Assembly (NCBI GenBank): GCA_029953675.1
Contig: JAMWBK010000007.1
Span: 930,001 to 994,000, forward strand
Direction: 5' to 3'
Length of the DNA stretch: 64,000 nucleotides
Origin: Rhodosorus marinus CCMP1338
Taxonomy: Eukaryota; Plantae; Rhodophyta
Shown here: positions 34,332 through 37,300 of the stretch, piece by piece
Layout of the letters: the number at the start of each line of letters is the position of its first letter
Position numbering within the stretch: the stretch's first letter is position 1
The notes under the pieces: generated by a model
The model's input: only the letters and a program-made list of their open reading frames with translations
Databases searched by the model: none
What the model was told of the DNA's origin: nothing
Made by a program: the position numbers and the translations under genes

Positions 34332-37300
34332 TCACATCACGACGCAACAGCCTTCTTTGGGCCGGAGTCTATATGGGAGAGTGTCCGATCCACCGCCTGC
34401 TCCAATGGAGCTAGCTCCTATACGATTTTCGAGCATCAGTCTAGTGCTGCTGTCCGCTACTGTTGCCAACCACTTGGCTATATCTTCTTTCGACATATAC
34501 TTTTTCCCATGTTCTGCTAACTTGAACAGCGTCTCAACCTCTGTCTGGTACTGTGCGCACAATGCAAGGACGCTCCGACCCCTCTTGTCGACGTGTGACA
34601 GCCACTTGGCCGTATCTTCTTTCGGTACATACTGTTCCCCATACTCCAGCAACGCTATCAACGGCTCTCCCTTCTCCTGGTATTCCGCACACATATGAAG
34701 GACGCTCTCACCGTTGTTGTTGACGTGCGACAACCACTTGAACATCTCTTCTTTGGGTAAATACTTTCCCCCCGACTCCAGCAACGCTATCAACGCGTCT
34801 CCCTTCTCCTGGTGTCGCGCACAGAGATGAAAGACGCTCCAACCGTCGTTGTTGACGTGTGACAACCAATTGGCCATCTCTTCTTTGGACATATACTTTC
34901 CCCCATACTCCAGCAACGCTATCAACGCGTCTCCCTTCTCCTGGTATTCCGCACACATATGAAGGACGCTCGAACTGTCGCTGCTGACGTGTGACAACCA
35001 ATTGGCCATCTCTTCTTGGGGTAAATACTTTCCCCCATACTCCAGCAACGCTATCAACGCGTCTCCCTTCTCCTGGTATCGCGCACATAGATGAAGAACG
35101 CTCCAACCGCCTTTGTCGACGTGTGACAACCAATTGGCCATCTCTTCTTTGGACATATACTTTCCCCCATACTCCAGCAACGCTATCAACGCGTCTCCCT
35201 TCTCCTGGTTTAGCGCACATAGATGAAGAACGCTCCAACCGCCGTTGTTGACGTGTGACAACCACTTGGCCATCTCTTCTTGGGGTAAATACTCTCCCCC
35301 ATACTCCAGCAACGCTATCAACGCGTCTCCCTTCTCCTGGTTTAGCGCACATAGATGAAGAACGCTCGAACCGTCGTAGTCGACGCGTGACAACCACTGG
35401 GCCATCTCTTCTTGGGGTAAATACTTTCCCCCATACTGCAGCAACGCTATCAACGCGTCTCCCTTCTCCTGGTATCGCGCACATAGATGAAGAACGCTCC
35501 AACCGCCTTTGTCGACGTGTGACAACCAATTGGCCATCTCTTCTTTGGACATATACTTTCCCCCATACTCCAGCAACGCTATCAACGCGTCTCCCTTCTC
35601 CTGGTATCGCGCACATGGATGAAGAACGCTCGAACCGCCGTTGTTGACGTGTGACAACCACTTGGCCATCTCTTCTTGGGGTAAATACTCTCCCCCATAC
35701 TCCAGCAACGCTATCAACGCGTCTCCCTTCTCCTGGTTTAGCGCACATAGATGAAGAACGCTCGAACCGTAGTAGTCGACGCGTGACAACCACTGGGCCA
35801 TCTCTTCTTGGGGTAAATACTTTCCCCCATACTCCAGCAACGCTATCAACGCGTCTCCCTTCTCCTGGTATTGCGCACATATATGAAGGACGCTCGAACC
35901 GTAGTAGTCGACGCGTGACAACCACTGGGCCATCTCTTCTTGGGGTAAATACTTTCCCCCATACTCCAGCAACGCTATCAACGCGTCTCCCTTCTCCTGG
36001 TATTCCGCACACATATGAAGGACGCTCGAACCGTAGTAGTTGACGCGTGACAACCACTGGGCCATCTCTTCTTGGGGTAAATACTTTCCCCCATACTCCA
36101 GCAACTTCATCAACGCGTCTCCCTTCTCATAGTCTTGCGCACACATATGAAGAACGCTCAAACCGTCGTTGTTGACGTGTGACAACCAATTGGCCATGTC
36201 CTCTTCGAGTAAATTCCTTTTCCCTGACTCCAGCAACGCTATCAACGCGTCTCCCTTCTCCTGGTATCGCGCACATAGATAAAGGACGCTCGAACCGTCG
36301 TTGGTGACGTGTGACAACCAATTGGCCATCTCTTCTTTGGACATATACTTTCCCCCATACTCCAGCAACGCTATCAACGCGTCTCCCTTCTCCTGGTATC
36401 GCGTACAGGTATGAAGGACGCTCCAACCGTCGTCGTTGACGTGCGACAACCACTTGGCTATGTCCTCTCCGAGTAAATACTTTCCCCCCGACTCCAGCAA
36501 ATTTGTCAACTCTTCCCCCCCCATCCCCACCTCAGCGCACTTATGCAGGTACTCCCCTGCCAACTCCAGGTCCCAATTCGCCCCTTCTATAGACTGCCCT
36601 AAAGCAACAAAACGAGATTCGTCTAGATCCTCGCGACCCTTTCCGGATTTCGGCGACAATCTACCAGTCTTGCCTGCGTTCGCGGGCTGTTCTGACCCGA
36701 TCGTGCTGGCTACAGCTCCCTCCTGAGGAGTCTGACCGATACCTCTTCCATTTCTAGATTTATTCTCGGATGATTTGTCATCCTCTTCATCGCTCATCAC
36801 TGTCGACAATCTATCTTCAACTTCCCCCGGCGATTCGGGTGCTTCCCGCCCTGGATCAAGTCCCCACAGAGTCTCTTCCAGTCGAACCACAATTGTTCCA
36901 AACTCGGGCCGTTCCCTTGGTGCTTTGGAAAGACATTCACAAGTCAATGTCTTCACCTCCTCGGGGCAATCGTCTTTCATGGCCGACGACGGAAAGTCAT
37001 AAGTGCCGTTTTCCAACTGACGAAATATTGACCTCAAGTGCAGTCCCTTGTATGGAACCTCGCCAGAGAACAGCTCCCACATGAGAACCCCAAAGCTGAA
37101 AACGTCCGTCTTCCTGTTGAAAGTCGGTTGGTCCTCGGGGACGCATTCCGGAGCCATGTATTGATAGGTCCCGCCGTTGGCCCCAGCATGCGTAACCGCC
37201 GTGCCCTGAATGACTGCCGTCTCCTGCACGATTTTGGCTACCCCAAAATCAGCGATTTTCACCGCTCTTTCGTCTCCAGGCACCAGCACGTTCCCAGGTT

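Follow-up and report, generated by a model that had tools for sequence, protein, structure and literature searches.

Some NOD-like receptors (NLRs) of fungi carry ankyrin (ANK), tetratricopeptide (TPR) or WD40 repeats of high internal conservation (HIC), defined by an identity of 85% or more among repeats across a stretch of 100 aa or longer (Dyrka et al. 2014, PMC4986451). For the Podospora proteins HET-E and HET-D and for Pa_3_8560, it has been reported that such repeats are polymorphic in number and are exchanged, and that positively selected sites lie on the concave face of the ANK domain (Dyrka et al. 2014, PMC4986451; Ament-Velasquez et al. 2025, PMC12222747). Near-identical arrays with a few hypervariable contact residues are a hallmark of rapidly adapting recognition domains in these fungal NLRs. 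In brown algae, two reports describe candidate receptors of the leucine-rich repeat (LRR)-ROCO and NB-ARC-TPR types, which diversify via exon-shuffled repeat units (PMC3341825, PMC11378527). In this study, we describe two paralogous kinase-repeat genes, here called copy A and copy B, that lie in a 64,000-nucleotide window of nuclear, eukaryotic DNA of about 50% GC from the red alga Rhodosorus marinus CCMP1338 (contig JAMWBK010000007.1, positions 930,001 to 994,000; coordinates below are those of the window). We consider it probable on balance that the repeat array is the C-terminal ankyrin-type solenoid of a RAF-like kinase and serves as a sensor with a hypervariable binding face, diversified by crossing-over and conversion. 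Our literature search found no such hypervariable-repeat receptor candidate described for Rhodophyta, nor this pattern described on a kinase.

Results

Layout and product of the two genes

Both genes are on the minus strand, and the duplicated segment to which they belong spans 33951-38586 for copy A and 51231-57841 for copy B. Copy A is a two-exon gene with a product of 1301 aa, the spliced frame being continuous. The parts of the two genes are the following.

37566..38404, minus strand: copy A exon 1, in which aa 1 to about 170 make up the helical N-terminal domain, followed by the N-lobe of the kinase with its G-loop (LGAQGRVVKG) and VAVK; recognized from its open reading frame (ORF), the Pfam kinase match and the GT donor at 37565
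37399..37565, minus strand: copy A intron of 167 nt, GT..AG, read from the sequence with a continuous spliced frame; 100% identical to the copy B intron
34332..37398, minus strand: copy A exon 2, a 1053-codon ORF holding the array
36879..37398, minus strand: copy A kinase C-lobe (HRDLKPGN, DFG, APE), of the RAF-like type of the tyrosine kinase-like (TKL) group; from Pfam (PK_Tyr_Ser-Thr, 7.6e-38), AlphaFold2 and Foldseek
36579..36878, minus strand: copy A linker from the kinase to the repeat domain, acidic and Ser-rich in its composition
36486..36578, minus strand: copy A N-cap ANWDLELAGEYLHKCAEVGMGGEELTNLLESG, a partial repeat with two helices and no hairpin (AlphaFold2 helices 21-34 and 38-49 of the domain model)
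34506..36485, minus strand: copy A array of 15 units of 132 bp (44 aa), A01 to A14 near-identical and A15 a divergent C-cap; from tandem-repeat detection and anchors
34332..34505, minus strand: copy A C-terminal half unit, tail, CaaX box CCVVM (34335-34349) and stop, from the translation; the tail is common to copy B
56809..57671, minus strand: copy B exon 1, 97.8% identical to copy A
55738..56641, minus strand: copy B counterpart of the kinase C-lobe, linker and N-cap, with DLG in place of DFG and 98.7% identity to copy A
51803..55737, minus strand: copy B array of 30 units, from anchor slicing
51629..51802, minus strand: copy B C-terminal half unit, tail, CaaX box (51632-51646) and stop, from the translation; out of frame with the gene start as assembled

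The copy A product runs from the N-terminal helical region through the kinase and the linker to the N-cap, the repeats with their divergent last unit, the half unit and the tail with CCVVM. We infer from its composition that the linker is disordered; most of it lies outside both AlphaFold2 models, and the single block that overlaps each of them has a mean predicted local distance difference test (pLDDT) value of about 50. The N-cap is conserved in copy B, with a 3-aa deletion relative to copy A. Both copies end in GCCVVM, a CaaX box with a second cysteine adjacent, and a fragment of a diverged R. marinus paralogue (P0134) also ends in a CaaX box, RRRLRKSRCLVM. Through the predicted CaaX prenylation, the repeat array is probably held at a membrane. 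That the array is part of a spliced kinase gene, and that copy B carries frameshifts, had both been missed by an earlier, sequence-only reading of this DNA.

In copy A the kinase keeps VAVK, HRDLKPGN, DFG and APE and is therefore not a catalytically dead pseudokinase. The best Foldseek matches of its AlphaFold2 model are BRAF and CRAF (TMt 0.85-0.93, 27-29% identity), and plant STY/RAF-like kinases are among the top matches of the sequence search. The copy A kinase is an apparently active, RAF-like TKL protein kinase with intact catalytic motifs. The approximately 170 aa at the N terminus gave a weak Pfam match to MLKL_N (E 0.013-0.05; 15.4 bits versus a cut-off of 27), which was not seen for copy B, and a match to PUB10_N (E 0.017) that is well below threshold. 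A low-confidence AlphaFold2 model (pLDDT 35-63) predicts four helices in this region (2-17, 22-40, 47-65 and 75-100), followed by two longer ones ahead of the kinase. When the N-terminal-plus-kinase model was submitted to Foldseek, kinase structures dominated the matches, making the search uninformative for the N-terminal domain. No NACHT or NB-ARC domain was found in the 1301-aa product, for which Pfam returned kinase and Ank families only.

The repeat unit and its fold

Tandem Repeats Finder detects two arrays with a period of 132 bp, one at 34566-36500 with 14.7 copies (88% matches, score 2818) and the other at 51855-55752 with 29.7 copies (score 4631). We sliced the units by anchors placed on the conserved W-L-S and G-D-A-L-I codons. 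In copy A, sixteen W-L-S/A anchors stand exactly 44 residues apart, which gives 15 full units plus a half unit in one open frame; together with the 30 units of copy B, these are the numbers that the sequence-only reading had counted.

The period of 44 aa (132 nt) is not the 33 of ankyrin, and the 11 extra residues make up a third helix at unit positions 6-13. Pfam Ank_2 matches the array in 7 stretches (E 1.1e-31, 109.7 bits versus a cut-off of 27.3), and Ank_3 and Ank_4 are likewise above their cut-offs. We modelled the repeat domain (residues 289-1053 of the exon-2 ORF) with AlphaFold2, which yielded a mean pLDDT of 85.5 and a predicted template modelling score of 0.74. In every unit of this model, helix 3 (positions 6-13) is followed by a bridged hairpin (16-22), the 8 residues of helix 1 (23-30), a turn (31-34) and the 13 residues of helix 2, which runs from position 35 to position 3 of the next unit. 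With a probability of 1.0, Foldseek matched the model to the 24-repeat structure of AnkB (E 5.6e-16), NOMPC, TRPA1, Ankyrin-R and designed ankyrin repeat proteins (DARPins). The TM-scores are low (0.2-0.35 on the query) and the superhelix geometry therefore differs, as expected if the extra helix alters the superhelix. Taken together, the Ank_2 match, the AlphaFold2 model and the Foldseek results indicate that the unit is an ankyrin repeat with an 11-residue insertion forming a third helix, which agrees with the ankyrin-like core plus about 11 extra residues proposed earlier from the letters. Searching PDB sequences with phmmer and four units gave no match, and a profile search of the same sequences gave marginal matches to Notch ANK (E 0.03), which were used for position mapping alone.

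Where the units vary

Shannon entropy reaches 1.9-2.55 bits at unit positions 17, 18, 19, 21, 26, 29 and 30, and is at most 0.5 bits at most scaffold positions. The peaks are the three residues before G20 (17-19), the one after this glycine (21), the one after H25 (26) and the two after C27-A28 (29-30), and they match the list of variable positions in the sequence-only reading. Mean identity is 27% at these seven positions versus 79% at the other 37; an even spread of variation across the unit was not seen. A second, lower tier of variation (positions 1-6, 8 and 11) corresponds to three helix-3 haplotypes, GKYMSKEEMAN, GKYLPQEEMAQ and KRNLLEEDMAK. The hypervariable sites are enriched in the residues N, D, Y, S, W and R, and copy A alone has 4-5 residues at each of them. 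Over 43 units, amino-acid identity is 71% (copy A 76%, with 81% among its internal units; copy B 69%), and nucleotide identity lies above it at 85.5% (89% within copy A; range 84-91%).

Four of the hypervariable positions (17-19 and 21) belong to the hairpin and three (26, 29 and 30) to one face of helix 1, spaced i/i+3/i+4, and in the AlphaFold2 secondary structure the conserved V23, L24, C27 and A28 occupy the opposite face of this helix. In the marginal alignment to the Notch ankyrin profile (E 0.03), G20 corresponds to ankyrin G4, and positions 17-19, 21, 26, 29 and 30 correspond to ankyrin positions 1-3, 5, 10, 13 and 14. DARPins are randomised at positions 2, 3, 5, 13, 14 and 33. In the ANK-N5C library, ankyrin positions 2, 3, 5, 10 and 13 on the hairpin and helix 1 are randomised (PMC4308713). 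The Notch alignment and ANK-N5C are thus in accord with the earlier proposal that the variable sites are the ankyrin hairpin and first-helix positions randomised in designed libraries. On this alignment and the model, the seven variable positions form the predicted canonical ankyrin binding face.

How the two copies and their arrays differ

Outside the repeats, the copies are 97.8% identical in exon 1, 100% in the intron and 98.7% in exon 2, with 22 nonsynonymous and 5 synonymous codon differences and seven changes in the first 41 residues. The copy B kinase (minus strand, near 56.4 kb) has DLG instead of DFG, and a P where the G-loop of copy A has an R. While these flanks are 98-100% identical, the arrays differ twofold in length (15 versus 30 units), and three units of copy B are frameshifted.

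52841-52971, minus strand: B22, 1-bp deletion
52188-52318, minus strand: B27, 1-bp deletion identical to that of B22
52067-52187, minus strand: B28, 11-bp deletion

The deletion in B22 and B27 is accompanied by shared unique substitutions, which implies that an already frameshifted unit would have been duplicated; the sharing of the deletion in a duplicated unit, together with the 11-bp size of the third deletion, argues that the indels are real. In-frame indels are present in seven further units (B01, B03, B05, B06, B15, B19 and B24). The first 21 units of copy B form an open frame, which is lost after unit 21, and because the net shift is -13, the C-cap and the CaaX box are out of frame with the gene start. 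As assembled, copy B is probably either a pseudogene or affected by assembly errors.

According to the sequence-only reading, the first three and the last three units are collinear between the copies and the core between them is reshuffled. The collinearity of the ends was borne out, and in fact extends to the last four units (A12-15/B27-30). The internal order does differ; however, free shuffling does not describe it, since block duplication and deletion explain most of the difference and the shared blocks keep their order. Reciprocal best matches pair A01-03 with B01-03, A08-09 with B04-05, A12-13 with both B22-23 and B27-28, and A14-15 with B29-30. Copy B contains a two-unit block of 264 bp three times (B09/10, B11/12 and B13/14), and its units B15-16 resemble B24-25. 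The differing internal order thus mostly reflects differential duplication and deletion of blocks, as expected from unequal crossing-over.

Recombination is also visible at a finer scale. The 43 units have 34 distinct seven-residue signatures, only 2 of which are common to both copies. Loop and helix-1 variants have recombined, MEY being found with the loops NYYS, SSDS, NNNE and APDR, and CGN with TNDS and DNWR. The four-gamete test failed in 129 of 406 site pairs, and the minimum number of recombination events (Rm) is at least 6 within 132 bp. In three positionally matched unit pairs a 3-nt IA/MK patch flips, which looks like conversion. It had been claimed that the three helix variants are mixed combinatorially with the loops; the variants are real and combine with different loop and helix-1 variants, but LPQEEMAQ is always linked to the SRV-D/N-Y loop type (H in one unit). 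The proposal of unequal crossover or conversion, made at the same time, fits the difference in unit number, the higher-order duplications and the recurrent multi-nucleotide patches.

Relatives of the repeat

A two-unit profile was searched against 1.84 billion representative proteins and gave 82 matches at E<=0.001, with 23 at E<=1e-10; ordinary ankyrin proteins were unmatched. With only these matches, and with ordinary ankyrins unmatched, the 44-residue three-helix ankyrin repeat type can be regarded as rare. Fragments from R. marinus transcriptomes are included in the top matches, and hence diverged paralogues exist and are expressed. Protein P0122 is encoded on a contig of unconfirmed origin, Ga0186194_103271 of JGI 3300016967 (best match to the genes described here, 64% identity). 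It consists of a fragment resembling the N-terminal domain (with DQCIRDLQL duplicated), a linker and four 44-aa repeats. As it is without a kinase domain, it may represent a paralogue or an isoform that lacks the kinase. Word-indexed searches of proteins, for which the exon-2 ORF, the N-terminal exon and the array served as queries, returned only generic kinases, one weak match and one paralogue fragment, and thus no orthologue of another strain; neither an exact 27-mer scan nor a protein-guided scan found a copy of the gene in metagenome or transcriptome contigs. The term library, used in the sequence-only reading, implies many variants across individuals, and the comparison made here is one between paralogues.

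Two proteins of the mite Blomia tropicalis, KAI2802360.1 and KAI2796149.1 (the pair P0123/P0125), are large proteins with a lipase-like domain and a NACHT-like P-loop region that is below the Pfam cut-off. Both have 15-30 near-identical 41-aa units with the same extra helix and with variation around the G and after LAA, at positions equivalent to the variable ones of R. marinus, and their arrays can be seen as a parallel natural library in an animal NLR-like protein. Several of the long profile matches are NACHT proteins. The metagenomic proteins P0127 and P0140 have NACHT domains above threshold, the units of P0127 looking longer and different. Its association with signal transduction ATPases with numerous domains (STAND NTPases) speaks in favour of this type of repeat acting as a sensor.

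Other features of the window

The 13 kb between the paralogues contain the first two of the following features, which complete the description of the window.

40742-42061, plus strand: reverse-transcriptase ORF (RVT_1, 3.4e-10)
46761-47771, plus strand: copia-type integrase ORF (rve, 1e-13)
2841-4754: tandem repeat of 410 bp, 4.8 copies
22420-22831: tandem repeat of 154 bp, 2.7 copies
44520-44958: tandem repeat of 27 bp, 16.5 copies
31008-31292, minus strand: gene for a small glycine-rich RRM protein of 94 aa, which occurs a single time in public assemblies, on this contig of GCA_029953675.1
212-898, minus strand: ORF fragment matching a Na+/H+ exchanger transmembrane domain (9e-15)

That the DNA is bacterial or viral can be rejected, given the spliceosomal intron, the retrotransposons and the assignment of the contig to the R. 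marinus nucleus. Long ORFs in alternative frames or on the opposite strand of the arrays, among them 34708-36057 (minus), 35255-35647 (plus) and 52005-52976 (minus), are by-products of stop-free 132-bp repeats and not genes.

Discussion

According to the explanation that we favour, the array interval is the C-terminal domain of what would be a cytosolic, probably membrane-tethered RAF-like Ser/Thr kinase. It would form a solenoid of 44-residue units, each with an inner helix, an outer helix, the extra third helix and a beta-hairpin, in which near-identity is kept at scaffold positions and difference is found at the seven positions of the predicted binding face. The most likely function of this face would be that of a ligand-binding sensor surface. 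Unequal crossing-over between 132-bp units would alter their number and order and short conversion patches would add further change, while selection may have retained or favoured amino-acid diversity at the contact positions. If the repeat domains of fungal NLRs and the NACHT proteins with this type of repeat are taken as a guide, the binding of a ligand would control the kinase and the N-terminal helical domain to which the array is attached, and a plausible role would be in recognising other organisms.

The evidence for diversity-favouring selection at the contact positions is good but not formal. Pairwise dN/dS (nonsynonymous to synonymous divergence, Nei-Gojobori) is 3.2 at the seven hypervariable sites and 2.9 at the helix-3 haplotype sites against 0.71 elsewhere, with an array-wide proportion of synonymous differences (pS) of 0.10. 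Positionally matched units of the two paralogues show 33 nonsynonymous versus 4 synonymous codon differences, and the 7 hypervariable codons account for 13 of the 33 (p = 0.001); such units differ by up to 11%, and the flanks by 1-2%. Counted as minimum events, there are 93 nonsynonymous to 11 synonymous changes in total, and 23:1 in copy A alone.

Several points speak against this explanation. The hypervariable sites were picked from the same data as the dN/dS values, and synonymous differences are few. In the minimum-event count, the nonsynonymous:synonymous ratio is 39:4 at hypervariable and 54:7 at other codons, with no difference between the two classes (Fisher p = 1.0). Surface positions are the least constrained under neutral drift too, and the solvent exposure of these positions was deduced from secondary structure and alignment and not from coordinates. 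The amino-acid identity of the units (69-81%) is under the 85% of the HIC criterion. Copy B is frameshifted, so that part of the diversity may be decay. Furthermore, the assembly was made with NextDenovo from Oxford Nanopore Technologies (ONT) reads and polished three times by Pilon with 100-bp Illumina reads, a procedure that is weak inside such repeats.

Among the other explanations, we give an even chance to the one by which the difference between the copies is mainly the decay of a dead duplicate, copy B being a pseudogene and only copy A functional, so that the reshuffling would be little informative on function. The three frameshifts and the in-frame indels of copy B are what this would predict, as are the change of DFG to DLG, the 22 nonsynonymous versus 5 synonymous differences outside the repeats and the many scaffold singletons in copy B. 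However, the same concentration of variation is found in copy A alone (4-5 residues per site; 23:1 events), and the first 21 units of copy B are an open frame. For copy A, decay of the duplicate is compatible with a diversified sensor.

We regard as rather unlikely that the array is a structural or scaffolding ankyrin domain under neutral concerted evolution, in which crossover and conversion homogenise an array that was amplified recently, differences gather at unconstrained loop and surface sites, and neither adaptive diversification nor variable recognition plays a part. Pure relaxation predicts a dN/dS near 1 and not about 3, and the event total of 93:11 exceeds a rough hand estimate of about 3:1 for neutral change. 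In addition, the hypervariable variants are at intermediate frequency and are reused in new combinations, N, D, Y, S, W and R are enriched at these sites, and the same repeat type is present in NACHT sensor proteins. Neutral evolution would nevertheless account for the event-count ratio being equal in hypervariable and scaffold codons and for the larger number of synonymous variants per codon at hypervariable codons (0.57 versus 0.19), and many ankyrin domains bind one fixed partner.

It is highly improbable that much of the pattern (number and order of units, indels, some of the substitutions) is an artefact of assembly or polishing. Such an artefact could arise if the 132-bp repeats were collapsed, expanded or mis-polished, and the frameshifts of copy B and some variants would then not be real. 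We discount it since, although short reads have no unique placement in units so similar in this Nanopore and Pilon assembly and fungal work finds such repeats unreliable in short-read assemblies, copy A is a perfect open frame of 15 x 132 nt, the variation is codon-structured, multi-nucleotide and common to both copies (DKGGW in A08, A11 and B04), an 11-bp deletion is atypical of ONT error, B22 and B27 share their deletion and unique substitutions as expected of a duplicated real unit, and long-read assemblies have been adequate for such repeats in Podospora.

If the array is indeed a hypervariable sensor on a RAF-like kinase, the genes would be a concrete candidate for biotic recognition in Rhodophyta. 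They would also represent a strategy for generating diversity that is not tied to NOD-type receptors, as the array is here joined to a lipid-anchored kinase, and they would define a rare three-helix, 44-residue variant of the ankyrin repeat, of possible interest to repeat-protein engineers. A more far-reaching proposal, which we think unlikely, is that red algae possess, in these genes, intracellular recognition receptors of a class distinct from NLRs. Such a receptor would be prenyl-anchored, and its hypervariable long-ankyrin array would control both a RAF-like kinase that is active and a helical executioner domain resembling that of MLKL; this would be an independent invention, outside the STAND NTPases, of hypervariable repeats on a conserved scaffold. 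Our literature search found no immune or allorecognition receptor family of this design described for Rhodophyta.

Comparison with known systems

TKL kinases combined with ankyrin repeats are known in both orders, with the kinase followed by C-terminal ANK repeats in RIPK4 and ANKK1, and with ANK repeats followed by the kinase in ILK and the plant ANK-kinases; these proteins have about 3-11 ordinary, diverged 33-aa repeats. The R. marinus genes are like RIPK4 in joining a TKL-group kinase and ankyrin in the same domain order. They are unlike RIPK4, ANKK1, ILK and the plant ANK-kinases, which are not known to carry one, in having a hypervariable array, and in that the best structural match of the kinase is BRAF/CRAF. 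With MLKL and the plant MLKL-like proteins, which consist of a four-helix bundle, a brace and a pseudokinase, they may share a helical region ahead of the kinase, as suggested by the low-confidence model and Pfam matches that are sub-threshold (15 bits versus 27). In contrast to MLKL, the R. marinus kinase keeps its catalytic motifs, and the repeat array and the CaaX box are without an MLKL counterpart.

Like the brown algal receptors, the R. marinus genes are algal, repeat-based candidates that exchange repeat units. The brown algal genes have one LRR or TPR repeat per exon and GTPase or NB-ARC cores, whereas the R. marinus array is intron-free, ankyrin-like and linked to a kinase.

The likeness to DARPins and ANK-N5C (PMC4308713) lies in the fixed caps, the consensus scaffold and the variation at hairpin positions 2, 3 and 5 and helix-1 positions 10, 13 and 14. 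This is an analogy only, as the R. marinus arrays are natural ones of 15-30 units, each unit with one helix more; they draw on limited sets of residues, and some of their modules are linked. A parallel in repeat layout is offered by NACHT proteins with long-ANK arrays (units of 41-44 aa), such as those of Blomia tropicalis, with which the R. marinus array has in common the SVLH helix, a second helix, an extra helix (ELIEWIK/EEMAxWL) and the hairpin, as well as variation around the G and after LAA. The mite proteins have a lipase-like domain and a putative STAND NTPase upstream, where the R. marinus product has a kinase. P0140 and P0127 have the NACHT domain in common with the mite proteins and the profile match in common with the R. 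marinus array.

The HIC repeats of fungal NLRs are the closest known phenomenon, though the R. marinus genes are not members of that class. They lack NACHT and NB-ARC domains, the array follows a RAF-like kinase, the unit has 44 aa with an extra helix versus 33, and unit identity is 69-81%, slightly below 85%. Their mode of action would nevertheless be similar, with a kinase as the chassis, a predicted CaaX anchor and a modified repeat. Like the fungal repeats, the R. marinus arrays consist of near-identical solenoid units with a few hypervariable positions on what is predicted to be the concave ANK face, and they change in unit number (here between paralogues), recombine and, in pairwise estimates, show an excess of nonsynonymous differences.

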